Positions 6,301 to 41,158 of a stretch of DNA of 64,000 nucleotides are shown here, piece after piece. Source of the DNA: Oopsacas minuta (Eukaryota > Animalia > Porifera); NCBI GenBank assembly GCA_024704765.1, contig JAKMXF010000111.1, forward strand, positions 1,256,619-1,320,618, read 5' to 3'. Under the pieces are notes generated by a model. The model was not told the origin of the DNA. It ran no database searches and saw only the letters and a program-made list of their open reading frames with translations. A program made the position numbers and the translations under genes. Within the stretch, counting starts at the first letter, position 1; the number at the start of each line of letters is the position of its first letter.

Positions 6301-9300
6301 CAGGTACCATTTGATGTACAATTACCATCATTCTGACAATCTGGTTGACAAGATAAATTCTGACAACTATCACCATAATAAAGACCAGGGCATTCACAGG
6401 TACCATTTGATGTACAATTACCATCATTCTGACAATCTGGGTGACAAGATAAATTCTCACAACTATCGCCATAATAAAGACCAGTGCATTCACAGGTACC
6501 ATTTGATGTACAATTACCATCATTCTGACAATCTGGTTGACAAGATAAATTCTGACAACTATCACCATAATAAAGACCAGTGCATTCACAGGTACCATTT
6601 GATGTACAATTACCATCATTCTGACAATCTGGTTGGCAAGATAAATTCTGACAACTATCACCATAATAAAGACCAGGGCACTCACAGGTACCATTTGAGA
6701 GACAATTACCACCGTTCTGACATCCTAATGGACATAATATATCTTCACAAGTATCTCCACTGTACCCACTAGGACAGTAACACATACCAGCGTGACAACT
6801 ACCGCCATTCTCACAATTATTAATACACTCACATTTTTTATTGTTGACACAGACGCCGGTAGCTGGACATGGGTTCTCATCATTACAATTTTGACATGTG
6901 ACTTTGAGCAATTCAAAGCAATCATCTACCACTGAAAACGTACATTCGGATAAATGTAATTCTGTCCCAATGCAATCAACCTTGACTCCACTTGTCGCTT
7001 CACCCTGTTCCCAACTTTCTTTAGCACTTGGTCTATCCCTACTTAGACAAAATACTGACGATTCATTCAAACTCCAACCCGAAAAACAAACGTCGGAATA
7101 TGTATCCCCATTCTCACAAATTTGTAGACGCTTGCCAGCTCTCTTGGTTTGTCCATAATTACATGAACTCGAAGTTTGCAATACGACAGTACCAGCAATT
7201 AACAGAAAAGCAAAAACTAACATATTAATATAATAGTATTTGTATATTCTATATGTATTTATATAAATTGGCCCTAGATAGTTGACTGTAATAGAATACT
7301 CTCTCTCATCCAATAATAGTGTTACTAAAAATAATTACTTTAATACTAGATTTGAGCATAATAAATGTCAAATATAATTATATATATATTAGCCTTCGGC
7401 TCGCAAACAAAAATTCACATACGTACATATGAGCAATTTGTGAAATTCAGATTCAGCATACTTGGTATATATATATATATATATATACCCTTGTGTAGTC
7501 ACTGACAGCAAGTTTCTATGTATAATTTAGATTTCGTTAGTTGTTTACATTCATAAAACAACAAATAAATATAATCATCTACAGTAGAACGCGGATAACT
7601 GGATAACTCTCAGTTTATACGTATAGTCGAGGAGAACATAGCCAAAATAATGCGTACTAATACGATTTTTGCTGAAAGTGATAAATAGGAGTATGTCAAT
7701 GCAGAATCCAGCGGGTGACACCTTGGAAGTCTCCTGATTCTGCACTTATACACTTTCAGCAAAAACTACTACTGTAATAATTCTTCTTCCAAACAAAATC
7801 TCAAATCACCGCCTGTGCCCACGTAATTTCCAGCATTTCAAGATTTTTATATTATTTGTTTACTTTATATTCATAAAATCAACAATAAATTTACATATGA
7901 GAAATTTAAGGATGCCAAATTCGGATTCAGCGTACTTAATTAGGGGCCGTTCAATGTTACGCAACTCAAAATTCTCTACATTCTGACCCCTTCCCCTCCC
8001 TATGTCATGCCTTTTGACAGTTTTTGTAATACAAAAAGAATGAGACTGTTACGCCTTGTATACCACCCCCTCTCCTTGGAGCGTTACGTAACGTTTGAAC
8101 GACACCTTACCCTTATACGTCTGTTGAGTCCGTGATAACATGTTGAAACCTAATCTCGAGCATGCTATTGAATTGTATATAGAAATGTATGAAAATATGA
8201 TTAACTACCTAAAAGGTGAAAACTATACACATTAGAATCTCTTCACATGTTAGGTACACATCTAGACGTCACAACGAGTATAAATGCCAAATTTGGTGTC
8301 TTAATCTCTAAAGGTGTGAACAGGAGAGTGAACACACATATACACACCAGTATATACATATATATATATATATGCCAAGTCAAACATTTTAGTACTGAGC
8401 CACTATGTGATATATTATATCTCAGAATTACGAAATTTTGACGAATTATATAACAGCATACTACACTTCCTTGACAACCGAGAAAGAGACAATAATTGAG
8501 ATTTAATGTAATATACGAACCCGGGGTATACAAGATTCATGAACGGACGCTGGTGGTGTTGATTTTAGACGATGAACGTGAATGAACTAAACGTGCGTCA
8601 ATTTGAGACGGATTGAATTGCATTAATTCAGTCTGTTCGTGAACCTTTCATTCCCTGAAAAGTACTAGATTCATAATCCGATATATTAAACTTTGCTAAT
8701 ACGCAAGCTTGATATTAGAGGAATTATTTCCAATACAAAATAGACTACAAAATAGAGTCTCTGAAAACTTGCTATTAGTCGAATATTGGTAATAGACGAA
8801 TTGCTAATAGGCGAACACCACTATTAATAATACATAATATAATATCTAAAACATTGGCTATTAATTCATTTAGAACTTCACCAAAATTGTACCTACTCTG
8901 CAAGTATTAGGCAAATTAGATATTCAATTAAGCATTATACTTGAGAGGGAACAGAATTTGTATTGATTTGTATATAATATTTTTTATATTTTCCAAGCTG
9001 ATCAGTGTAATTAGCGCTAGGTTAATTCCTCAATCTTTATGTTATCAAAGTATCTGACAGCATATGGAGTTATTGATGTAGGTTGGGTATTATGATCTTT
9101 GGTATCATGATGAAATCGTGAACGCATAAAATCCCATGGAATAGCATAAGAATAGACTATTGAGCGAGTTCTTTTTGGCGTTTTTGTTTCTACATCAGAT
9201 GACTCTTTGTTAGGAAAGTTTGAATTACTATATATTCTCTGTACTCTATGCGATTGGTTACACTTCACTTTCTTAATTGCTATACAGAATAAAGTACACA

Positions 9301-12300
9301 AACACACGCACAGTACGCCACAACCACAACCAACCATAAAAGTTGTAGATATTATCACACATAAGATTAACCAATTATCTGGTATTGATGTAATGGAATT
9401 AGGGATCAAACAATCTGAATTAAACAAATTATTACCAAAGCTATCATCAGAAGAATGATCAAAGCATACACAGGTACAATTTGTTAGACAACTACCATTG
9501 TTCTGACATTCTTTAAGACATAAGATTCTCTCACAACTATCACCATAATAAAGACCAGGGCATTCACAGGTACCATTTGAGAGACAATTACCATCATTCT
9601 GACAATCTGGTTGACAAGATAAATTCTGACAACTATCACCATAATAAAGACCAGTGCATTCACAGGTACCATTTGATGTACAATTACCATCATTCTGACA
9701 ATCTGGTTGACAAGATAAATTCTGACAACTATCACCATAATAAAGACCAGGGCACTCACAGGTACCATTTGAGAGACAATTACCACCGTTCTGACATCCT
9801 AATGGACATAATATATCTTCACAAGTATCTCCACTGTACCCACTAGGACAGTAACACATACCAGCGTGACAACTACCGCCATTCTCACAATTATTAATAC
9901 ACTCACATGTTGTATCGTCGACACAGACGCCGGTAGCTGGACATGGGTTCTCATCATCACACATTTGACATGTGACTCTGAGCAATTCGAAGCACTCATC
10001 TACCACTGAATACCTACATTCGGATAAATGTAATTCTGTCCCAATGCAATCAACCTTGACTCCACTTGTCCTTCCACCCTCTTCCCAACTTTCTTCAGCA
10101 CCTGGTCTATCACCACTTAGACAAAATACTGACGATTCATTCAAACTCCAACCCGAAAAACAAACGTCGGAATATGTATCCCCATTCTCACAAATTTGTA
10201 GACGCCCATACCTACTCTTGGTTTCTCCAAAATTACATGAACTCGAAGTTTGCAATACGACAGTACCAGCAATTAACAGAAGAGCAAAAACTAACATATT
10301 AATATAATATAGTTACAATAATTTTCCTTACTCCTTACTTATATATTTTCAGTATTATGATGTAATATTCTTTCAATTCATAGTTCCTAGGCCATACATG
10401 GATGCGTCCCAAAGCACATTTAACCGAGCACATATTAAATACAATATACAAGTAACTCATAATTTGAGAATAACATAAGTAAGCATATGTAAGACGAATT
10501 GAGAATAACATACGAAAACATCTTGTAAGCAAAATGTAATCCACTCTAATAATGCATCCAGTACAAATCTGCAACCAATATACATTTATGGCATAACTAC
10601 CGTGAGATTGCACGGGGAGACACATTTTAATTGTTCATCATTTTAAGGAGCGAATAGTCAGTGCCTACTACACACAGTCAACTCCCGTAATATAGAAACC
10701 CCAAGGGACCGTGATAATTACAGTCAGGGCCGCCTATTATCAACCCACAAGGGACCAAAAATCTTGTTCATAGAATTAATACATATAGAGACTTCATATT
10801 AAGGGAATTTAATTTAATACAAATCCTATGTGAATGATTTCTGGCTTGGTTCATAATAAGAGAATGTTCATAATGAGCACCTTTACTGTACTTCGATATA
10901 AATAGGATTCGATATAGCCGATGAAACTCTTAGGGATTATGTATATATGTATAATTTCTATATATCCGTGTTCGTTAATACGAAAGTTGACTGTGCTATC
11001 ATAAAAGTTAATTAGATACTTAAAGAATCCATAATAACGTAATTCACATAAATATCTTACTTATCAATAATCTTGATTTGTTTGCAAGCTCTTATATAGA
11101 TTAACACTTAGTCTAGGATCGTTCCCAATAATCAAGACAGGATCAGTTTGGGGTACAGGGGGCGGTAACTCTATTTCAATTAGCATACTCAATACTTTAG
11201 AAAAGGTTGGCCTTTCTGATTTTTCACTTCTCCATGTTTCTATCATTGTTTTGTATACATCTCGATTACAGCCTGTAGGTGGAGGTAACTTTGTCCCTAC
11301 TGATAGAGCCCTGACTATTTCCTCATTCGTAGAGTATGGCCATGGTCTCATTCCCAATGACCAGATCTCGTACATTGTCATGCCGAGTGACCACACATCA
11401 CTCTTTTCAGAATACTTTTGATAGAACACAGCTTCTGGAGCGCACCATCTGAACGGGATCTGTCCTCCCTTTGAAGTGTAGTCACCTTCCATACCGAACT
11501 GACGCGTCATTCCAAAGTCTGCAATACGACAAGTTAAGTTTTTAGATACCAAGACATTTCTTGCAGCAAGGTCGCGATGAATAAACTGCATTTCTGCTAG
11601 ATACTTCATACCAGCTGTGATATTGAGACAGAACTGTAGTAAGAGTGAAGGTAACAGCTGACATTTATCAAGTTGGGATTCTTTCAGCTTAAGCAAAAGT
11701 TCCCTCAGCTCAGATTTGAGTAGCTCTGTAATCATCATGTAAGGAGAACTACTAACTACACCAATTAACCTCAATACATTAGGATGTTTGAATTGGTTTA
11801 ATATCATTGCTTCCTTTATAAACGCATTTTCTGCTTCATTATTTGTATAATCTTTTAATTTCTTAACAGCTACGTCAATAGTACCATCAGGTGAACTATA
11901 TTGTGCACTGTAAACGATTCCAAACTGCCCTTGTGCTATTAACTGTCCAATTTTTAATTTGTCTTTATTTACTTCGATATTAGGATCATGACGTAGAGAT
12001 TTGATATACCGTGGAGGCTCAACGTATATCTTCCCAGAAGATGTGAGATGGTGATTCTTACTCACTCCTCGCTTAGAAATAGACGCATAATATTCTGTAT
12101 CAACATAACCGTCAAGGATGGAGGTATAAAAGTCTTCTTCCTTATGACAATCAAGTAGATTCGATTTACTTTTGGTAGTTGTAGGAGATTTTGGTTGGAT
12201 TGGTGATTCATATTTCCTTGAAGAATTTGCGTATGCTGTTAATGATGAATTAGAGGGTGGGACAGGAGGTATGGCCATCTGTGGTATAGGGTCAATAGAG

Positions 12301-24300: not shown

Positions 24301-27300
24301 TGGGGCGGGTGATACTCTAAGTACAAATAGAGCATGCTATGAGTACTTTTACCACCTCTTTCAACGGTTATACTGGGGTGTTCGAGTACGCTGATTCCGA
24401 ATTTTGCACTTTGAAACAGGGGTAGCGCCAGGAAATCCCCGACAAGGGGGCTTAGATCCCCAATGGGGGGGTCTAAATTTGTGACATAAATCCTAGAATA
24501 CTACACAGTTTTACTAGATATAATTCATATTCTTGTCAAATTTCTTCCAATTCCTTCCCAACGGGGGAGCTGTAGCCCCCTCACCTCCCCCTAGCGCCAC
24601 CCCTGCTTTGAAATTACTCATATGTAAATAATTGTTGTGTCTATAAACTAATTTCGAGGTACGAAGTGCCGAGTTCCATGGATCACAGAGTATTCGCAAG
24701 CCGCGCGCTCGTATATTTTATGGTCAGAAATCAAATTCATTGCACCTGTTGTATTGCAAATGCTAGAAACCGAATTTAGAGTAAAAATACTACCAAATAG
24801 ATCCCGGAATTTAATTTTAACCAAATAATATTAATCTAAAGCTAAATATTAAGATAATATCTCTAATATGAAAGCATATACTTTACCATAATTATTAAGA
24901 TACCTAGAGGTGTGCGGAAATTAAATACAATTAAATTCTAAGCAATTAAGCTGAATTCAATTATCTAAGTTCTAACAATCTTGACACTATATGCCAACGT
25001 AGTATTAATTTAATAAAATACAATTTCATTCTCATGGCAATCAATCATATGGTAATTATGTGATTAATCAGCCACAATTTGTAATTAGTTATAGCGTGGT
25101 GGTGTAATTAATTGGAGTTGAGAAAAGCATTAATAGTCTAAGATAAAAAGTAAAAATGATTGGAAAATTGAAAACTTGAAGTACGCTTGATAATGTCAAA
25201 GATAAAGTCAATCATATTTGTGTTACTGATCTGTCTCATGACTCAGGTTATTACTGTATTAACTTGTACAAATAGCAGCCAGTGTAATGGATCAGCTGTG
25301 TGTGGAAGCGGTGGAGTGTGTGTTTGTGAATTTCCTAATTTCGGTGCAGATTGTGAGTTGAGGAACTGCTCCCCTCCCTGTAATATTAACCAGACTTGTA
25401 ATAATCAAACTGGAATATGTCAGTGTAAAGTTCCATTCTATGGAAATAACTGCGAATTGAGAGGATCAGTTTGTCCAGCTCAATGCTTGAATGGAGGTTC
25501 ATGTAACTTTGCTGATGGTACTTGTCTATGTGCTAATAGTTACCATGGAGATGTATGTGAGTTACGAGTATGTATTCCAGCCTGTAAGAATGGAGGTGTG
25601 TGCATATCCCCTAATCACTGTAAATGTGTTAACGGTACGTATGGAGTGTTATGTGAAGAGTTTTTAGACGATTTAAATATAACAGATTTTCCATTAATTT
25701 TTGGTGTTTCAATTGGATTGATAGTATTTTGCTGGTGCTGGGTTATTTACGTAATCATAATATTAACCACTGAGGCCTTCTGTATCTGTAGAAGAAGGAT
25801 AAACAAGAAATCAACTCCACAACCACATCTTTCCCTAAGAACGCAATCTTCCATTAGAATACCGATGCATTTACCAACAGTTAATTTAGAAGCAGGAACA
25901 TTCGATATACAAAACTTAGGAATGACAGATATAGAAAGGAGGAGGAGTCATCTGGTTAGAAATCAATACTACAACAGCAATGAGAGTATAGAATACAGAG
26001 GATGTAATACCGAGACAGTAGCGTACATAGATCCAGATTTACTTTCTGTATCTCCAAACAGAAACTACAACGTCCCAAATAATGACCAACTAGCTGCATC
26101 AGAAGGGCATTGTATTACAAACCATCATATCAGAGAAGCTAGCTTGAATGCAGGATTATATCATGATAACAGTGACGTATATATTCTCCCAGATAATAAG
26201 AATACTGGACCTGCTCTACCACCGAAGCCAAGACCAAAAGCTAAATTTGAAGAGACTCGAAAGAGATTAAGAAAACAAAGATCAAATAGCTATGCAAACG
26301 ATGATTATATCATTTATGAAACTATTGGAGAAGAAGATAGAACGATGGATACAATGTATTCACTGCTAAGCAAGCCAAACAAAAGCGAGCGTAGATGCGT
26401 TGTACTCTCAAATGAAGAAAGAAATTCTCTTCCCAGAGGGAAAACTAGTTATAGCACATTCCCTGGCTTGCTAAAGCAGAGAAGGCAGACTAGATACTTC
26501 AAAGAAGCTCCAATCTATGACAAACCTTCCACAACTCTGGATAAACTGTTTGATCAGATGTCAGGCATGAATTTCAGGGAAATAGTGCCAGACACATTGA
26601 TCACGAGTGAGCTATTGGGGACAGGAGAGTTTGGGATAGTTTGTAAGGGTGCGTGGATTTCTAGACTGGGAGAGGTACCTGTAGCTGTGAAAACTCTGAG
26701 AGAGCCTAGTACTGAAGAAAGGAAGATCGCTCTGTTCCAAGAGGCACTTATCATGGGACAGTTCTCCCATCCAAATGTAATCAGGATTCTAGGTATAGTT
26801 AGCATTAGGGAGCCTTACGCAATCGTATCAGAATTGATGAAGACTGAAATGCTAGTATTTCTACGTACAGTGAGAAATTCAAAGATTGATTTGAACAAAC
26901 TGCCTCCTCTCTTGCTTAGGTTTTGTCGTGAAATAGCAGCAGGAATGCAATACCTCGCTTCAAAGCGTTTCGTGCATCGTGATCTAGCAGCGAGAAATAT
27001 TTTAATCGCGAACAACTACACTATTCGCATAGCAGACTTTGGGATGGCTCGTGAAATTATAAATAACAGCGAATACTACTCTACTTCAGGGGGTAACATA
27101 CCGGTTAGATGGACAGCACCTGAAGCTTTGTTCAATCAACTGTATTCTGAAAAATCTGACGTGTGGTCATTCGGTATGACAATGTTTGAGATATGGTCTC
27201 TAGGTCTCAATCCATGGTACAATTTATCTAATGACGAGGTTATACGAGCTATCCATGGACACCGAGTTCACCCTCCACCCACAGGTTGTCCTAGAGACGT

Positions 27301-30300
27301 ATACTTCATTATGGTAGAAGCTCTGAGATATGAAGTGAAGAAGAGATGTGTATTTACTCAATTCAGACAAATGCTGGAGGCACCGATTGTACTACTAAAA
27401 CCAACAACTGGCACAAATGCAGATGTGCTCGGTAACGACCCTAACTTGGCTAAAGACCTCTACTCTGATTTACAGACAAAGTACATGTATTGAATTAGTA
27501 TGTCGGTTTATAAATGTGAGCATATAGTGATAAAGAGCTATACATATGTATCTACTGGTTGTGTCCCATATTTTGTTTGTAATTTTCAAATTAACATACT
27601 TCATAAGCAATTAAAGAATATCTAATTAAAGATTAACACATCGTAGAGATTTATAATACGCATCAAAATATGGTGTATGTACCATTTACAATATACTGTA
27701 TTAACATACTTTATTTATATCTGTATTTATGAAAATATATAACCTAAGACAGACAAATATCGAGAAATTAATTTTTCATTAGCTAAGAACTAAGAGAACG
27801 CCAATTCTAACTGATGTACAAATACAATTAACAATTTTAATCCGCCAAATTTCGCATTATTTAAGTAAATGAGATGGTTTACACATTTTTCAGTTTATTT
27901 AATCTAAACAATTTGTACAATAAATAATGATACAATTAATTGATGTTACAACACATTCTACATCGCTAATTGCATTATGTAATGTGGATTTATTTCGTTT
28001 TGTATCTCTTTTGCAAATCTAAGTACAAATATTTTGATAGTGAAGGTTCATTACCTACTAGATTCATTGGATCTGTTTCAATCCCTTTTGACAACTTGAT
28101 ATCATTTAACTTCACACATAAATCGGAGAAAGTAGGTCTATTTTCAGGCTCTGGGTTCCAAATCTCTATCATAAGCTCGTAAATATTCCTAGAACACCCA
28201 GTAGGTGGAGTAGGTAGATTATGGTGAAGGAGTGTATCCACCACCTCTTCGGTAGTTAGTGTACACCAAGGTTTAAGACTCATACCCCATACCTCGTACA
28301 TAGTCATGCCAAACGACCAGACATCTGATTTCTCACTAAACCGCCGATAGAAAATAGACTCCGGAGCTGTCCATCTCACTGGAATATGAACTCCTGAAGA
28401 TCTATGATACTCCTTTTCAGTCTTAAGTTCACAGCACATACCAAAATCTGCTATACGACAGCTAAGGTTGATTGTCAGGAGAACATTTCGAGAGGCTAGG
28501 TCTCTATGGATGAACTTTAGATTACTCAAGTACTCCATCCCAAGGCAAATTTCAATGCAGAATTTATGAAGTAAGGTAGGGAATTTTGATTTCTCAATCG
28601 GAGATTTGTTTAACTTAAAAAGGAAGGAGTCTAATTGATCCTTGTGTAACTCAGTGACTATCAAATAAGGTTTCCCTAGGGTAACGACCCCGAATAGCTT
28701 AAGAATGTTTGGGTGGTAGAACTGTCCCATAACTGCAGCTTCTCTCAACACACCAACCACTTCATCAGTATTTTCGGAATTGTTTAGTGCCCTGATCGCT
28801 ACAGGAATATCTCCGTAGTTACTGGCCCAATTTCCTTTGAAAGTATCAAAAAACTGTGCTTCAGAAAGCTTTTCCTGTGGACTCAGAGTTTTCCTGTTTA
28901 TCTCGCGAAAATTAGATTTTGACATCTCATTATATATCGTGGAAATGTCCTTTGAAGGAATTTTCAATCCAGCTTGTTGCTTGAAAAAGTTAGTCTTGTC
29001 TAAATTTGAATCAGGAACTTTCTCAAAGACAACTTCATAATCATTTCCTACATTATTCCTTTCAGTAGAATTGAGTACAATAACTGCAGTTTTATAGTCA
29101 TCCTTCACAGTATGGTTCTCTGTAATTTGTTGGTACATTGATTCACTAACTTTGTTGAGATTCCGCCCTAGCTCGTATGCTCTGTAAATGTCAGATACTT
29201 CATCATAAATAGTACTATCATCATGTAAATCCTCATCTCTATCAGAATAATCATTGGCCATTATCAGCTCCATTGTGCTGGTAGGGCTCACAACATTAGG
29301 TTCGCTGTACGGAGGAGCTGCTTTCTTAAAACGTTGCTGTGGGGATTCGTGCATAGTTTGGTTTTTCAAATTAGAGCCTGTACTCTGGGAACGACCATCA
29401 AGCTTAAAAGACTCATAAATAATTGAAGAGTCGTTCAAAGGTCTGTCACCAGAAGAAGTAATAGTAGACATGGGCATCTGATTGGTACTACCGTGTGTAT
29501 CGCTCAAAACCGAATTTTCATAGACATTACGGTTCATTTGTGAGGTAGCTAAGACAACAGGCACATTATCCAGGCTATACTTCTTACGAGTAGCACAACA
29601 GGCGGAAAGACAAATACATATCATACAAGGACAAAGTAGACAGCAACATAATAGGGCGAATACCCCGAACAACGGTATTACAAGCAAATACAAACTGATT
29701 GCATTATTACTGAAAAAACATTGGAGGATAATACAAGCTATACTACTCGAGTCACAGATAAGAGTGTACAGAGAGGTGGAGTTTGTGAATGTTAGAGTAT
29801 CATTCTGATAAGCACAGTCTGTAAGGAGAGCATTAGATTCGTTCCCCACATAGACAAGGAATATGATATACAAGTAGATAAATACAGACATTATTAAATT
29901 CTATCGATTAATATGAATTATGATATTCGAATATAATTGTATAAATATAGTATTCAGTGAGATAATGTGACTATAGAAATGTGCCCAATGAGGATCAAAT
30001 ATCATAAACTGTCTTTATTAAGAACAACTAATTCTAAAGAATAACTTGCAAAAGTTCTATAATATCCTATGAATAATCAAAATTAGCAACTATTGACAGT
30101 TAAATCAATTAATATATTATTTTAATGAGAATACTACAAATATCAAAATCTAACAAAATCATTTCACAAAAAATAAAATGATACAAATACATAATTAACT
30201 AATTGTCAACTTGTGATAATTATACGTTATTAATATCTTCAACACTATTTCTATCATCATGTTGTTGTATCACATATTTAGGCTCCATATTAGTGTAACC

Positions 30301-33300
30301 ACTCTCTCGTGAGCTAACAACCTCAGCTTGTACCGGGTTATTATTCTCCTCAGTCACAGAACGCCGGACCTTAGCTACACCTACTATTCCTCCATTCCCT
30401 TTATTGTTCATAAATGTTACGAAAGGGTAACTGTACTCGCAAGATTGTCTCGGAATAATCTTATGGGAGGGCTTAAGAGGTATATTGAGATTCTGTATTC
30501 TATCACGGGGACCAACTGGAGGGCGAGGAGGAAGGGGACGAGTCTCAAAAGAATTGACAGGATTGTTCATTTCCTGATAAGATTCCGTGGCGGGAGGAGA
30601 TTCTACATGAGTGGTTATATTCATATCTGTGTAATCGTGTAGAATAGAGACATGATGATTCTCTAAGTTAGTTATATTTTGTAAGTTAAGTTGATGGGAT
30701 TGAGTTTCGTTCCCTGCCATTCGACGCGATCCTAACCTAGCAATCCTTTTCTGTGATTTTCTCTTCCCACAAAGACGACAAGCAACCAAGGCAGGAATAC
30801 AGCACAACAAGCATATGTGACATATAATGATTGCAGTAACACCCACGCTAGGAATAATTAGAGTTAAATAGAGAGGATATCCGATATCTAGACCTAATAA
30901 TCCTGTCGGAGCAACACTAACATCAGTAGACGTAGATATATTATTAAGGTCAGAAGCAGAAAACTCACAGCGGGAGCCAAAAAACTCACTGGGACAGTAG
31001 CAATCATTGAGGACACAAACTCCACCATTCTGACATATGATACTGTCATCATTACAAACGGTTACAGTGCAAACTTGATTAGGAGTACCAGGTACACAAG
31101 CAGCAGGTAGGCAAACTTTCATATCTTCCAAGCATACTGTTACCGAAGTATCTTCTGATTTTATTAATGTTATAAAATGGCATATTAAAAAGAATATTAA
31201 AGTACTCTTCATTTCAGAGATATGGTAATTTGTTTGTAGATAAGTTATGTTAGATTAGATTTAATGTTCTATTTATCCACCTAGAATCTACGTGGTTTAT
31301 AAACCGGATTTTAATAAGAAGTAGTTTAAATCATTCAAATTCACAAAATATTACAAGAACTGTGTCTACACGTAATGTCAGCACAAATAAGGACAACACA
31401 ATTTGTGTAGGAGTCACATCAGATCATGATATCTCTATGTTCGAATATAAGCTCTATAATTACGTGAGATTACAATTAATACTCTAATAAAATGATCCTA
31501 CAATTCAACCTGATTCTAGAGATAACCAAACCAATAAAAAATTCACTACAAATACTTTGAATTCCCTAATAAGGATTGACCACAGTAAATCAGTTTGCTT
31601 TGTTAAGAAAGCTTAGCTAATATTCTGAATACTCGGTACACATTTAGACATATTCAACTAAGTATAATTAATTTCTAACTATTCTCTGAAAGTTTACGAA
31701 TCATTTGTAATTTATTTCTCTGAACATAAATATGTGTGAATGTTTTGCTTGGATTTTTCAAAGGGAATATTCATGAGTTCCGCTCAATGCAACTAGAATA
31801 TTCAATTTCTTCAGGCTAGCTACAAGTTTGGAAATTAACTACACATATAACAGACACCTCATGATAATCTCAGCTGGCATAGCCTTGCCGGAAATATTAT
31901 GAACTGATCCTGGCGAGTAGTTAAATTTAAGATTGCGTATACAGTTCAATACATGAGATGATGTGCGTAGAACAATACAATATATATAGTAGATAAGGAA
32001 GTGGTATGTTACTTATTGTACGAAGTAAACCTATGAAAAGTGTCTATGTAGACTAAATTTTACCTGAATATCTTCAAAATGACAAGAATGACCTGGGTTG
32101 ATTAATTTATGTGCAAACAAATCAATTCATAAATCTCGTCATGAATATTTAGAATTATTCAATAATAGGTTTGATAATATAATCGAATAAACTACTATCT
32201 CATATATTTGCTTTTACAAAGAGCACAGTTATCAAGACAAAGGCCAGCATCTAATCATTTTAGCAGCCTTGGAGGGTAGAACTAACGAGTGTGTAAGAGA
32301 TGCTAAACTGATAAAGAAAATATTAAATATTCAGATTGCTTAATATTGTAAAAAGAATTAAAATTGCGCGAGAAATATTTACTAATTGTATATAGCTGTG
32401 GCCTGTATATTAGCAGAGATTAGTTTGTATTTTTAGGGTACTTAGAAATTGTCGATATACGTATTAAGAAGTAATATGAGAATGCGGACAACTTGCATAG
32501 CCGAATAGGTATACTAACTCATATGAAAAGAGTTAAGTTTGAAGAAATATAGATGAGACTAATATTCAGCTTTATTTTCACAGCATTTTGGAAACAAATA
32601 GTAGCACCAGAAGTGAGAGAAGTATGTCAATCACTAGGTGCAGTGAGAGAGTTCACAAACTCAGCGTATCCCCAACTCTGCAATGACGTTGGTGGGATGC
32701 TTGAATGGAATTATTTTTGTAACAATATCATTATGAATGATGGTAACGTAATTTGCAGAGCACTAGGTTATCCAGGCTACGAATCAGTCGAAGAAATTCA
32801 TTTGGACATATTTAATCCAATAACAAAGATAGCTAATCTGAACTGTGCTGGAAATGAGACAAGATTGACCGATTGTCCATATTCTGAAACAACTAATAGC
32901 TGTATGGTAGCAAAAGGGTTGATATGCACCAGATGTAGTGTCAATTCAATGTGTTCAGGTCCAATAGGGCAGTGTACAATGAACGGGAAATGTAAATGTT
33001 CAGAGGGCTGTATAAGCGGGTACTGCTATCTGGGGAGGTGTATATGTTCAGATGGGTTTGCTGGTACTACATGTAATGAGTGCGATCCTCAATGTGATAA
33101 TGGAGGTATATGCTCTGCTAGCGGGATGTGTGAGTGTATGTCACTTTATTCAGGTGACAGATGTGAATTCAATAACAGCATAATAACACCGACTAATAGT
33201 ACTATATCTATTGTTGATAGTCTAACCTTGATTATCATTGCTGCAGCTGTTCCTTCACTTATATTCAGCTGTACATTGATAATAATCTGCTTCGGAATAC

Positions 33301-36300
33301 TAGCCTTCCTAATGTTCTTTGTGTCTCAAATAAAACCGTCCTTGGGTAGGAAGAAAGTTGAGAATACTAAAATGACTGAAATGACTGTGCAAAACACTAA
33401 CAAACAATTTTCCAACAGAAAACCTCACGAGTATGAGCTAGAATTCGAAAATTCGCACGATTATTACTACATTAGAAATAGTCAAGTTGGACAGAATTCA
33501 TCTAATCCATTCTTGACGACCCAAGTAAGAGATGATAATTATGAGATAATAGAGTCAAGAAACATGTCTAATCAAGCTAAAAAACAAGAAGACCCGCCGC
33601 AGGATTTCTCAACTAATTCTACTTCAAACCTGGTGGATAAAGATCCGAAGTCAGATTATGTAATTGATGATATTAATGATTATTCTTAAGTTTCCTGATA
33701 TTTTTGAATAATATGACACTGAAATATAAATTTATAATTTAGTTCATTCGTGATTTAAAGGAGCACTATAATTAATTTACAGTAAGGGTCACAAATTATG
33801 AACATTCTTTTCTCTAATTATAAACCAAATCAGTGGCCCCAATAACTCATTCCCATAGGATTTGTATTAAAAGTAGTGGGCATCGCTTGCTTGCGCTACA
33901 CGAATCAGCTTTCTTATGTCCCCAATAGTGAACAAATATTCACAATATGTTGTTTACAATATTCATATTCGGAATCAGCATACTCGATTACCCCAGTATA
34001 ATGTTTATTTGTTGTTGTTGTTATGTTGTGTAATATTTGGTTCTGGACTTTATGAACTGAACCTATATAGTTCTATACGGGGGCGTGACAAACATACAGA
34101 CACACACAAAATACTGTTCAATTAATCACAATGTAAGATTCGAGAATTTACGGATACCCTCAAGGGCGGGCCTGGAGTACGACCTTCTCTCCCTCTCATT
34201 TATGAAATTAATTTGACCAGGATAATGAAACTTATAACTTTCAAGAATATCTGAAACTATGGATATGTAAACATTCTAACAAATATATCGTATTAATTAT
34301 CGTTCATATTATCGATTACATAAAATGACCTCTGGACTACATCTGAGGTAGAATTAGTTGGGAAATCAGGTAACAGGTCATCTTTAGCTCTATCTGATTC
34401 ATTAAACGTGTTTCTTGGCTGTATTGACTTAGAATTGCCATTATAAACTGGAATAGTTACTAATGGATTCGATGAGTTCTGTTCAACTAGTGTATCTTGA
34501 ATGCAGCAATAATTATGAGAAATATCGAATTCAAGCTCATACTGTGGAGAGTTTATATAAGAAGATTTCTCAGAGCTGTGCTCTGTTATTACAGTCATTT
34601 TAGCATTTTCATCAACTGTTTTCCGACCGAATTTAGGTTTCATTAGACACACCATAATTGCTAAGCAAGCTAATATTCCGAAGCAGATTATTATCAAGGT
34701 ACAGCTCAATATTAGCGATGGGACAGCTGCAGCAATGATTATCAAGGTTAGACTAGAATCAGTAGGTACTACTTCAGGGAAGAAACTAGTATTAGTCGAA
34801 GGGAATTTTACTGTTGTATTATTAAATTCACATCTTTCACCTGAATAAGATGGCATACACTGACACGTCCCGTTAGCAGTACACACACCTTCATTCTCAC
34901 ATTGAGGGTCGCATCCACTACATGTAGGACCACCAAACCCATCTGAACATAAACACTTCCCCAGAAAGCAGTACCCTCCGTTTTCACAGTCATTGAGACA
35001 TACACATTTCCCATTCATTGAACACTGTCCTCCTAGACACATAGAATTATTCGTACAACTGATACATGATAGTACTGTTACAGAACATGTCAATAATTCA
35101 GAATAAGAACATTGATTCAAAGTAGTTTCATCTCCCATACAGACTAGGTTGTCTATAGCTAGAGCTGTAACGGTCATAGAGGTGGGCGTGGCGGAATCTT
35201 GCATTGGAAAGCCAAGTACCTTGCAAAATACCTTGGCCTCCTTCTTACCGAAATCACCGCAAAAAGAATTCCATATTTGGGTTCCACTTGCATTACTACA
35301 GAGTTGAGGATACATGTCATTGTATAATCTCACTGAACCTAGTGATTGGCATATTTGTGGAGCAGTTTGAGCTTCTATTTGATACCATAATGTAGACAAC
35401 AGCAGATAGAGAATTAATCTCATTTCTACGCTGATAATATTGCGTATTTATTATTTTCTTTAGTTATCTACCAATTAGATATTAACTCCTTCAGAGTTTT
35501 CTTACTTTAAAGAATTATAAGAAATGAATAGTACCTACTTTGTAAATACTGCAATAAATGATATCTCAACTGGTAAAACTACTAGTGTATCATCTTACTA
35601 CCTAGATAAACCTTACCTGAGCATGGTATTCGCAATGGTTTAAGAATTGGGGCCACCACGAGTCCAGGGGTTATTTACAGACCTTAAACTCAAACCCATT
35701 TAGGAAAAATCAATTCTTTGGATTGGCCTTTACAAAAAATGTCCAGCCGACAGACTGTAGTGCAGCTCAGGGTTATGTATTTTGTTCTTTTCAGGGGCAC
35801 GTCTCCCCTGACCCCCCACGTGTGTGTGTATGCGTGTAGATGTTGCAATGCACCAGACCCCGACTGATTTTGGGCTCCTGGATCTAATAAATAGTTCAGG
35901 AGATTCAATATTATTAGTCCCCAACTGTACTTCATGTTCTATTCTCAAATCCTATGGATAAAATTCTAAATAAAAATCCTGCAATTGTACCCTGTCTAAC
36001 TTTTGGAACAAAATCTCTAGCATCAATTTGAAATATGTGCGAAAAAGTGTGAAAATATGATAAATCATGTAGATATCTAGCTTGCTTTTGTATTTGACAC
36101 ATAGAAAGGTGTTTTCACATATGATTAATATCACCAAAAAAGGTGTGAAATATTCACTTTAGAAAAATTCATACCCAAGTTGCAAATCTCCGACCAAAAA
36201 TGTACATGCGTACCAATTTTCATGTGAATCGGACTGCTATCGTAAGGCAGATTTCGAACGGCAGAAATTTCACAAATTGTTCCTCAAATAATGGATTAAT

Positions 36301-39300
36301 TATAGCATAAATGAAGGGAGGGGGTTTATTGAAACCCTAAAATATTATAACAATCAACAACTAGTGCAATTTTAATACGATAGAAAACTATAAATGTATA
36401 ATCGTACACAGTTGGTGATGGATTCCAGTAGAAATATTACTACAAATAATATCATTCATCAACACTTAAGACTCATCATATTCAACCACGGATTGGTTTT
36501 CGTAAGCATTCTCCTTCCAATCACTGTCCTGTTTTTTAAGTAACAAATTAGGAGATGAAGCTTCCATTAAAATAGGAAGATTTCGTATAGCAGGTTCTTC
36601 ATGATTTGATGCATTGACGATTTGATTTTCATAATTAGTTGTGGAGTCAAATCCTTCCCGATTTAAACTTGTTTTGGCTTCAAGCACAGAGTCTTCAACC
36701 TCATAATGAGAAGTCTTCTTTTCTGAGGGTTCATCTATGCTATTACTGTTTGGCATAGGTGGCCTGCTATCCATTTCTACATAAAAGGATTCATCCCGTG
36801 CAGGAGGTAGGGCAGGTGGCATCCCATGATCCATCATACGCCTTTCGTCAACGACTGTATAAATAGTTGATGTTCTTTCTAAGAAGTCCGGCATCTGTAA
36901 ATCAAGTTTTTCCGGTTTGACATTTTTATGCCACTTATTTTTCATCATAAAACATACCATAATACACAGGCACAAGCATAAAAACGATACCAATAATATG
37001 AAACCAAACAACACGCCAAATACGACAATGCCTAACAAGATAGGATCCGAGAAAATAGATGAAGTTCCAGTAACAGGAGATTCTGTTGTATTATTGATAA
37101 ACGTTGTAGTAGGAATGCAAATATTGTCTACTATTTGCCCAGCACAACAGGAAAATACGCCATCATTCAAATTAACAAGGCATCGACTGCTAGATGGACA
37201 AGGTGGAGAACATGTCATAAGAATTTCACAATATTCACCAGTGTAAGGAAACTGACATTCACAAATACCATTGTCTTGACAATTACCAGAGTTTTGGCAA
37301 GGTGAAGAACATGTCATAAGAGTTTCGCAATATTCACCAGTGTAAGGAAACTGACATTCACAAATGCCATTGTCTTGACAATTACCAGAGTTTTGGCAAG
37401 GAGGAGAGCATATCCTATCCTCACAGTCATCTCCTGCATACCCATGAAAGCAGACACACCCTCCTACGTAACACACCCCATTCTCACACTGTTTGCAGCT
37501 ACAAGTACCGTCAACATTACATATAGAGTCATCGTCACCTAAACAATCTGTATATGAAGTGCATGATTCACAAGTTAGTCCACTAACGTAATGACATAAA
37601 CCAGTCATTACATAACCGCCACACTCGGAAATGTTTGTAGGACTTGGATTTCCCAAACAAGCAAAGTTTGTATATTTAGGGGTTCCAATATCGCCTACGT
37701 ATACAGGCATTATCATTGCGTCATCATTGATGTAGCCACTTAAATAACAGAAATTCTCGCTGTTACCACCAGATGGTGCCCAGTTCCCGTTATAACACAT
37801 GGACATGAAATAGAGGCCAGCGTCAAAAAAACTAATCGAAATATTAGAGGCGTTGAAGTAAGCACATATTTGAGGGAATGATCTGTTAGAATCGTCGAAA
37901 TATATTCTAGTGTCACCTGAAATCTGACAAGGTTCTACGGGAGGACCTTCGATTCCATCCACAGGACAAAAGACCGCACAAAACAGGATTATAGAGGAAT
38001 AAATGAAAATTCTCATTTTGGATAAATTATTGTTCTTGGAGGTTTAGTAAATGTATATACTGAGGAGTTAAAGGCATATTGCTACCTGATGACCAATACT
38101 ATCCCAGCAACTTACTAGGTTACATGTTGCAAAGTACAAATTAATGCAAAAGTATGTCAAATCATTATTGTAACTCGAATAAAGTACTCCTATAATGTTT
38201 GTAATGTAAAGTGCTATTATTAGATGCAACATAGGGTGTAATAGGCGTGACGAGAGGTTAGAGAAGGACATTAATAAAGATATCTTCTACCTAGCAAAAT
38301 CAGAGATGAAAGAAAAACGATACTACAATAATTACATACTCGGATATTAATAATCATTTGTATTATACATATCTTAATGCAAGAATTCCATCTACACTCT
38401 GCTCCATTAAGATCAAACCAAATCATTTCTTAGGTAATCATCAAGTATTATTTATTAATTTTCTGTGTAAAGAGTGTACCCTTTAAAAAGTGAAATAACA
38501 CAATTGGATATGAGATGGAGAATATTTAACTGTGTATCAACAATAAATACACACTCTGGCTCTGGTCAAACATCAGGGCCGGTGCCACCGTGGGTGTCCT
38601 GGGTGTCCAGACACCTACTGCCACGAAAGACCTTTGCATTATCCTCTATGGTAGATGCTGTTTAGACACCCAAAAGCTTCAATAGGCGGCGCCGGCCCTA
38701 AATATCATAAATCTCCCGAAAAATACTAGCACATAGTAGTGAATCGGTCTGAAGATCCGAAGATGAGATATTCGTGAAAATGTCCCGATAATACTCGTAT
38801 ACTCTAACCAGAGTAGACTGAATTATATAATTACACAATTAAAATAGATAATCTTAACCATAAGCTGCCATAACTAATGTATAACTACGAGTAATATTAT
38901 GCTGCAAATGTCTACACACTACCATTATTCGAATTAACTAAATAGAAAAGGAAATTTATTTTTGAATAATTGTATATGATAGATATCATCACATAATATT
39001 CAGAGTAATATTAAGAAGAAAATTACAAATGAGATAAAAATAAAATTATCTCCAACTACCCACAAGGAAATATCCTAAAGTTATTGAACTTTGTGGGTTA
39101 ATATGGCTCGTACCACTCACAGTTTGTTATAGCGATTATAAAAGTGTGAAATCGAGTAGAATAATAAACAAACTGTACTAATGAATATATTATTCTATTA
39201 TCTGGTGATCTTATTATTAACTTATAACATACATGTTATAGTAGAGACGCGTAGTCTAACGGGAAACTACACTAGAGAACGATTAGTAACAGATGAAACA

Positions 39301-41158
39301 GGCTCGCGTTGTGTGAATGAATATCGCTACGAAAGTGATAATAATGTATCTTGGTTGAGGATATGTGCAGATGAAATGAGTGAGCATACTGTAAGCCTTT
39401 TGTGTAGAAATCTTCTGGATCTTAGTACAAACTCAATAGAGATAAATGATTCTGAATCTCCAAAGAATCGAAATGAAAAAGTGCGCATAGATTGTGATGG
39501 AGATGAAACCAGATTAGAAGAGTGTAATGTTGAAATAGTCAATTCCTGTAAAACAATCCTGCATGACAAAGTATGTGTTAACTGTAGCCAAAACTCCCAG
39601 TGTAATGGATCAGCTGTGTGTGGAAGCGGTGGAGTGTGTGTTTGTGAATTTCCTAATTTCGGTGCAGATTGTGAGTTGAGGAACTGCTCCCCTCCCTGTA
39701 ATATTAACCAGACTTGTAATAATCAAACTGGAATATGTCAGTGTAAAGTTCCATTCTATGGAAATAACTGCGAATTGAGAGGATCAGTTTGTCCAGCTCA
39801 ATGCTTGAATGGAGGTTCATGTAACTTTGCTGATGGTACTTGTCTATGTGCTAATAGTTACCATGGAGATGTATGTGAGTTACGAGTATGTATTCCAGCC
39901 TGTAAGAATGGAGGTGTGTGCATATCCCCTAATCACTGTAAATGTGTTAACGGTACGTATGGAGTGTTATGTGAAGAGGTGGACTCAGATATATTTCGTC
40001 ATGGATTAACGGTTGGTGTCTCACTTGCTGTTATAGTTTTTTTCATTTTAGTTATCATATGCATGATAATTTTGCTATGTATACAACTCAAAAAGCTAAT
40101 GAAGTATAAATTGGATGGAATCTCTATTCGCAAGAAGAAAATACAAAAAGAATTGAAAAGAGAAGTTCAAATGGAAGATTACGTAAATATTCCCAAAGAA
40201 ATACATAGGCAACAAGCACATCTTACACAAATACAAGCTGTCATACCGAATCTGAACCGAAACAGATTATCAGAAGTATACTACGCTATTCCGCAACAGC
40301 TAAGAAATACGGAATACAGAGAAGAGGGTTACTCTACTATGCGGTTACACTACGATAACGTAATCGCTGCAGAATCATGCCAGGATATAGAAAGCGGACA
40401 GCAAGAGCAGAGAACAGAAACTCCAGAATATATTGAGCTGCAATAGATATTCTGTCACATAGAGTGAGTAGATTAGTTTAGTTTAAGAAAGTTTAGGTTG
40501 ATACAAGATTTTCTATGTTCTAATTAAAATATTAATACAGTCTACATCTGGTAACTAGAATGCCCGTTAACTCGAACGAATATTCAGTTCACTTCGTTGT
40601 ACTTTTAGTACTTATCGCATCCGTTAACTCGAACATTCGATTTTTCCAACAGATTTTCAGGAATCGAATTACTGAATGTGAACTATATAGTATATTAATT
40701 AAATCTCCATTTGTGTCTGTGTGTCTGTGTGTCTGTCACGCTCCCATATAGAGAACATATAGGTTCAGTTCATAAAATCCAGAACTAAATACTACACAAC
40801 ATAACAACAACAAAACAACATTGTACTGGGGTAATCGAGTATACTGATTCCGAATATAATATCGTAAACAACATTTCCTAAATATTAGTTCACTTTTGGA
40901 GACATAAAGAAAGCAGATTTAAAGTTTATGGCAGTATCATGTTTGCTACGGTTAAGATGAGACCAGGGGGGGGGTCGACAAAGTGCGGCCCCTCATAGCA
41001 AGTTTGGGCAGCGCGGGCAAGCTTCAGATACTCACATAAACTAGCTATCTTCGCTGTAATAACTAATTCCATAACCTTATTTGCCACCCGAATCTTCTTG
41101 TTTAAGTACTTTTGTATATTTAACATAGCCTTATTTAAAATTTCAATTATTTCTTTAC

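Follow-up and report, generated by a model that had tools for sequence, protein, structure and literature searches.

Probable recurrent gene conversion of one EGF module between a receptor tyrosine kinase and a kinase-less receptor of the sponge Oopsacas minuta

The genome of the hexactinellid (glass) sponge Oopsacas minuta carries a tandem cluster of single-pass receptors, which we analyzed in a window of 64,000 nucleotides (assembly GCA_024704765.1, contig JAKMXF010000111.1, positions 1,256,619 to 1,320,618 of the forward strand; all positions given below are those of the window unless another locus is named). The window is gene-dense, with 32-39% guanine plus cytosine (GC) and long uninterrupted reading frames. 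Pfam scans assigned a tyrosine kinase domain to seven receptors of the cluster and EGF-like and/or SRCR-like ectodomains to about seven kinase-less ones; PA-RING, PARG and TRAF-like genes come after the cluster. Here we focus on a stretch of DNA encoding four EGF-like modules, referred to as the cassette, which is present in identical form in two of these receptors, the receptor tyrosine kinase R7 and the kinase-less receptor R13 (Table 1).

Table 1. Positions of R7, R13 and the two cassette copies in the window.
Feature	Position	Strand	Basis
Cassette copy 1 (in R7): starts just ahead of Cys2 of EGF1, ends two residues beyond EGF4	25279..25660	+	exact match
Cassette copy 2 (in R13): identical to copy 1	39597..39978	+	exact match
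R7: intronless receptor tyrosine kinase, 766 aa	25193..27493	+	Pfam PF07714, E 1.7e-75
R7 predicted signal peptide: 25 hydrophobic residues up to Cys1 of EGF1	25193..25267	+	read from sequence
R7 membrane span: hydrophobic stretch, then R-R-R	25691..25771	+	sequence
R7 tyrosine kinase domain (residues 471-727)	26603..27373	+	PF07714, 254 bits
R13: kinase-less single-pass receptor, 421 aa	39181..40446	+	open reading frame, Pfam scan, orthologues in relatives A, B and C
R13 signal peptide plus cysteine-rich tip, diverged SRCR-like and fast-evolving	39181..39594	+	
R13 membrane span	40006..40083	+	
R13 cytoplasmic tyrosine motifs, kept in all four orthologues	40273..40440	+	alignment

R7 combines the parts that define a receptor tyrosine kinase, namely a signal peptide, an ectodomain of four six-cysteine EGF-like modules, one membrane span and, after a juxtamembrane region of about 280 residues, a kinase domain with intact catalytic motifs (glycine loop, VAVK, HRDLAARN, DFG and PVRWTAPE). 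Its ATG is at 25193, the listed open reading frame (ORF) beginning at a TTG at 25187, and the uninterrupted ORF is kept in five related assemblies. The mature ectodomain consists of almost nothing but the cassette, and the cassette must therefore be the part of R7 that meets a partner. A public O. minuta gene model (P0002, 264 aa, 'Protein shifted isoform X4') treats 25955-26192 of R7 as an intron; the splice shifts the frame and the predicted protein stops before the kinase. Because the removed stretch encodes protein and five orthologues conserve it, this model is probably wrong; otherwise it would represent a kinase-less isoform of R7.

R13 starts with a signal peptide and a cysteine-rich tip, which together place 138 residues above the cassette, and continues with four EGF modules, the membrane span and a tail of 120 residues. 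The O. minuta tip gave no Pfam match. SRCR (PF00530) matches the tip in two of the four R13 orthologues (best E 8.5e-6), and an AlphaFold2 model of R13 derived from a four-row alignment was too poor to use (mean predicted local distance difference test score 39.9). Within the O. minuta genome, no paralogue of the tip was found at an E value of 0.001 or better, and no paralogue of the tail was found either. Although the tails of the four orthologues are otherwise only 27-38% identical, the columns E365, Y368, Y384, M387, P415, Y417 and L420 are invariant. The conserved motifs are E-V-x-Y-A-x-P (40273-40293), G-Y-S/T-x-M (40327-40341) and, at the C terminus, P-x-Y-x-E/M-L (40423-40440; only P, Y and L invariant), and are of the Y-x-x-M and Y-x-x-L types. 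An L-H-Y-D-N-V sequence (40345-40362) resembling an immunoreceptor tyrosine-based inhibitory motif (ITIM) is not kept in the orthologues. With its conserved motifs, R13 could plausibly serve a tyrosine kinase as substrate or docking protein. Similar tail motifs occur in other kinase-less receptors of the cluster: V-Y-x-Y-A-I-P in R2 (9017-10297) is matched by V-Y-Y-A-I-P in R13, and G-Y-S/T-x-M is present in the tails of both R9 (30220-31212) and R13 (40273-40341), which suggests a common docking function of R2, R9 and R13.

The two cassette copies agree base for base over 382 bp and lie 14,318 bp apart, start to start. The tract begins at the third base of the Ser codon preceding Q-C-N-G-S, between Cys1 and Cys2 of EGF1, ends after L-C-E-E, two residues past Cys6 of EGF4, and includes 23 of the 24 cysteines of the four modules (residues 30-156 in R7 and 140-266 in R13). 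An earlier note on this DNA had described an identical cassette with these borders, making up nearly the whole ectodomain of R7 and the stalk below an SRCR-like tip in R13. The alignment, with zero mismatches, and the reading frames confirmed this description. Against a cut-off of 22.1 bits, the EGF family PF07974 is recognized in R7 (23.0 bits) and just missed in R13 (22.0 bits); the Teneurin-type EGF array PF25024 stayed below its cut-off of 65 bits (55 and 48 bits). Outside the tract, identity drops at once to the random level of 28-35% (ungapped, 30-400 bp on each side). A search of the whole O. minuta assembly (61.46 Mb, 365 contigs) placed the 382-mer at exactly two sites, and the closest EGF stretch elsewhere in the genome reaches 43-54% protein identity to the cassette. 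An exact match of this length within 64 kb is far beyond chance. No difference was found at about 80 synonymous sites between the copies, whereas the synonymous divergence (dS) of the cassette to the nearest relative is about 0.7. By our arithmetic, these unchanged sites set a 95% upper bound of about 0.04 on the pairwise dS, at most about 5% of the cassette divergence between O. minuta and that of relative A, described below. These data support a very recent copy-paste event that made the two O. minuta copies identical.

To place this event we used five related assemblies from ENA, termed relatives A (ERZ25071281), B (ERZ20067936), C (ERZ25072730), D (ERZ25072740) and E (ERZ25766962). Word-based protein searches returned R7 orthologues in all five and R13 orthologues in two, and contig walking extended this, giving R13 orthologues in A, B and C overall. 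A profile search with the four R13 orthologues returned no additional one, and did not return the protein of relative C either. Relative A holds R8 to R14, Sen15, PA-RING and PARG in the order of the window, and the order R6, R7, R8, R9, R10 to R14 and then Sen15 is comparable in relatives B to E. The called R7 genes of C, D and E are truncated; their open frames extend upstream through the EGF ectodomain to the signal peptide. A tree of R7 outside the cassette contains the groups (O. minuta, A) and (C, (D, E)), and leaves open the placement of B, the most divergent sequence. Between-species dS outside the cassette is at or near saturation (0.5 within C/D/E, otherwise above 1.2).

R7 and R13 share a block with each other in relatives A (286 bp at 95.1%) and C (273 bp at 96.0%), and no such block in relative B. 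The blocks of A and C are only 67-77% identical to the O. minuta cassette. Over the cassette, nucleotide identity between the two genes is 100% within O. minuta, 93.8% within A and 94.9% within C, as opposed to 52-80% between species. The corresponding dS values are 0, 0.149 and 0.114 within species and range from 0.54 to saturated between species. In a maximum-likelihood tree the cassettes cluster by species and not by gene (support 97/99 for relative A and 87/89 for relative C), and the approximately unbiased test rejects a clade of the three R13 cassettes (log-likelihood difference 145, p 1.8e-67). In relative C, EGF3 is absent from both R7 and R13, leaving three modules each, and it is present in all other full-length R7 orthologues, among them that of relative D from the same C/D/E clade. 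This C-specific loss in both genes indicates that a module deletion was copied between them in the C lineage. In relative A, R13 lacks the EGF1 that R7 has, and the shared block comprises EGF2-4. In O. minuta and C the block opens at Cys2 of EGF1, and in O. minuta, A and C it closes 0-2 residues after Cys6 of EGF4; in all three species, identity of 95-100% gives way to about 50% or less over a few codons at either end.

The earlier note had proposed that orthologues would date the event and name the donor, and held that its reading would fail if relatives carried the cassette in both genes with normal synonymous divergence. The dS values do date the event as recent. The comparison does not point to a donor in O. 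minuta, because the outgroup copies A_R7 and A_R13 (75.9% and 77.0% identical to the O. minuta cassette, which is thus equidistant from both) have themselves been homogenized. The cassette is indeed found in both genes of A and C, but with low divergence.

We consider concerted evolution of the R7/R13 cassette through recurrent interlocus gene conversion, limited to a single module, to be the most probable explanation (probability about 0.8). The paralogues are closer to each other within than between genomes, the tract is discrete with diverged flanks, and the events would be independent in separate lineages since the EGF3 deletion is specific to C and the within-species dS values differ. R7 and R13 would be old paralogues of the tandem cluster that share a four-EGF module. 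A break in one copy would be repaired from the other without crossover, a non-allelic exchange between directly oriented genes 14.3 kb apart that could overwrite the homology block in part or in full. For O. minuta, the latest exchange or exchanges would be too recent for differences to have arisen, and those in A and C would be older (dS 0.11-0.15). The tract borders would be sharp because usable homology stops there. Upstream, homology covers only about seven codons, from Cys1 to Cys2 of EGF1, at about 50% identity, and beyond them the R7 signal peptide faces the R13 tip. Downstream, the juxtamembrane and membrane segments show faint protein homology (z 2.1-8.1 against shuffles, strongest in B), and their DNA is far too diverged for heteroduplex formation. 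From these patterns we infer both the repair mechanism itself and the presence of the block in R13 before the lineages split. The combination of tip and EGF stalk in R13 appears to be older than the split between (O. minuta, A) and (C, D, E), in which case the O. minuta event reset the clock and made no chimera. The R13 cassette has a nonsynonymous divergence (dN) of 0.20, which is the R7 rate, and the tip (0.53 to relative A) and tail of R13 evolve 2.7 times faster (0.53-0.55). This difference may mean that R7 is under stronger constraint than R13 and perhaps usually acts as the donor.

Several points weigh against this explanation. The relatives are probably hexactinellid sponges, an assignment based only on synteny and on 56-76% R7 protein identity. 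The R13 comparison covers O. minuta, A, B and C. Relative B possesses an intact R13 with only a four-cysteine remnant in the stalk position; together with the open placement of B, this means that the R13 block is either ancestral or was gained after B branched. There is no rise in GC content at third codon positions in the cassette (0.27 in O. minuta compared with 0.31-0.35 in the remainder of the genes, and none that is consistent in the relatives). GC-biased conversion might produce such a rise, a signature that is typical and not obligatory. Lastly, copies differing at a few sites could have been merged during assembly by SPAdes and Pilon, which may have slightly inflated the exact identity in O. 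minuta; here 100% means complete or very nearly complete identity.

The remnant in B gave no sign of being a deleted EGF1 converted from B's own R7, as its DNA identity to B_R7 (58%) shows no excess over that to EGF1 of other species (58-68%). A younger tract nested within the block was not significant in relative A (91-bp clean run, 14 mismatches; permutation p 0.058) or in relative C (p 0.64). Relative E has no R13 between its R12-like gene and R14. In this single case the R7 stalk (L020:9512-11632; L023:15573-16353) consists of EGF1, an EGF2/3 hybrid and a two-cysteine remnant of EGF4, with an intact kinase.

Does selection maintain the identity? One addition to gene conversion, possible but on balance doubtful, is that R7 and R13 are paired receptors whose EGF module is kept identical by selection for a common ligand or for mutual binding, with R7 phosphorylating the R13 motifs. 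In three lineages homogenization is limited to an ectodomain module and leaves the signaling parts distinct, the tyrosine motifs in the R13 tail are invariant despite the low overall identity of the tails, and R1/R2, a second kinase/kinase-less pair in the window, also shares ectodomain sequence. The pattern further matches the merohomogenization described for vertebrate paired receptors (PMC3210942). However, the sequence pattern is accounted for just as well by neutral conversion within the limits of homology, and the dN/dS of the within-species cassette differences (about 0.3) equals the between-species value. The modules offer no odd cysteine for covalent dimerization, all 24 cysteines falling in modules with an even six. 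The stalkless R13 of relative B and the loss of R13 in relative E, where the R7 kinase is intact, argue against an obligate R7-R13 pair.

An assembly artefact, in the form of a false duplicate or of similar copies merged by graph simplification and polishing, appears very improbable. Pipelines of the SPAdes/Pilon type can merge near-identical repeats, and the HiFi-style assemblies of A and C give 95-96% and not 100%. On the other hand, both copies are in frame in intact, unique genes, orthologues carry the module in independent long-read-style assemblies, and a false duplicate would need to have replaced a homologous stretch exactly. A wholly false duplicate is therefore unlikely. Bulge removal would also be unlikely to merge copies that diverge by about 5%. 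Searches with the exact R7 and R13 proteins returned no second, independent O. minuta assembly, contig or transcript. The O. minuta sequence itself is a SPAdes hybrid assembly (k up to 99) of Illumina and corrected PacBio reads, which was scaffolded and treated with Pilon and GapFiller (PMC10280926).

Even less credit can be given to a single recent segmental transfer of the R7 ectodomain into R13 that generated a new chimera in O. minuta, as the earlier note had proposed. Zero mismatches, the sharp borders and the lack of paralogues of the R13 tip and tail in the genome would fit such a transfer, and its recent date stands (dS 0). The creation of a chimera does not: the R13 orthologues of A and C already carry an EGF stalk at the same place, the block borders are common to the species, and the faint homology between the R7 and R13 flanks runs through the membrane span. 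Equally remote is the idea that the R7 module was re-inserted into R13 separately in each lineage without homology, for instance by template switching. Although the O. minuta copies are identical right up to the block edges and the number of modules varies between species, it is unlikely that three insertions would each hit one site precisely and in frame, and homology-limited conversion predicts what is seen, namely common 5' and 3' borders in three lineages and a diverged homologous margin of about seven codons upstream.

Gene conversion restricted to one module of neighboring receptor genes is a known and ordinary mechanism; new is its setting in a sponge receptor tyrosine kinase cluster and its recurrence across deep lineages. 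Merohomogenization has been described for the paired opposing leukocyte receptors KLRC/NKG2, KLRI, KLRB, Ly49 and PIR (Fossum et al., 2011; PMC3210942). As in these families, R7 and R13 are neighboring paralogues with different signaling parts that are homogenized after speciation in an ectodomain module only, and group by species for that part. In contrast, the sponge pair consists of a receptor tyrosine kinase and a receptor that lacks a kinase and carries tyrosine motifs, in place of a pair signaling through an ITIM and through an adaptor with an immunoreceptor tyrosine-based activation motif (ITAM), the shared part is an EGF stalk, and R13 has an additional, unshared tip. Siglec-11/Siglec-16 and the CEACAM paired receptors are likewise kept alike by gene conversion (PMC5701461, PMC2832619), which maintains near-identical extracellular domains between clustered genes with different cytoplasmic tails. 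Those are mammalian lectins or adhesion receptors of the Ig superfamily, with known ligands and expression in the same cells. Domain or exon shuffling also places a domain-sized unit in two different architectures, but flanking introns are missing here, the unit would have been in both genes before the lineages split, and it is the homogenization that is recent and not the acquisition. Our literature search found no paper linking sponge receptor tyrosine kinases with gene conversion.

Within the window, R1/R2 (872 bp at 92.9% identity) and R4/R5 (822 bp at 97.9%, inverted) are two further converted pairs. Like R7/R13 they show high-identity tracts between otherwise diverged paralogues of the same cluster, in the front end of R1/R2 and the kinase core of R4/R5. 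Unlike them, R7/R13 has the only exact tract, which is limited to an internal module and connects non-adjacent genes with five others between them.

Other rearrangements were seen in the cluster and its counterparts. R12, on the minus strand, contains a 99-bp tandem duplication (37199-37396, 96% identity) that doubles one EGF-like module. R10 and R11 are convergent, tail-to-tail paralogues whose 3' coding parts (33018-33404 and 34566-34976) form inverted repeats of 76-83% identity. A dispersed non-coding repeat, perhaps a small mobile element, is found immediately after the R13 stop (40569-40919), between R10 and R11 (33903-34106) and after R14 (45378-45501), with 86% identity and one copy inverted. 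Between R7 and R8, relative D carries a hAT-dimerization ORF and two inverted integrase (rve) ORFs of 460 aa (L018:12654-17618), and relative B an actin gene (L017:13187-14317).

Our analysis indicates that concerted evolution restricted to a module, a process well documented in mammalian immune receptor pairs, probably also operates in an intronless receptor tyrosine kinase cluster of an early-branching animal, and that it spans deeply diverged lineages in which between-species synonymous sites are saturated. One consequence is that the EGF parts of such sponge receptors are no guide to orthology or dating; another is that identical tracts of this kind are likely weak points of assemblies based on short reads. 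R7/R13 represents a concrete candidate for a kinase/co-receptor pair in a sponge. By analogy, though we regard it as unlikely, glass sponges might run a paired-receptor system resembling vertebrate immune pairs, in which selected conversion keeps the EGF module identical, letting the kinase and the kinase-less receptor with its docking tyrosines recognize one partner or each other, and R13 contributes a fast-evolving SRCR-like recognition tip. If so, the cluster would hold at least two such pairs, R7/R13 and R1/R2, and the shared module in direct orientation could serve as a joint for recombination, allowing intronless receptor genes to exchange heads and tails.

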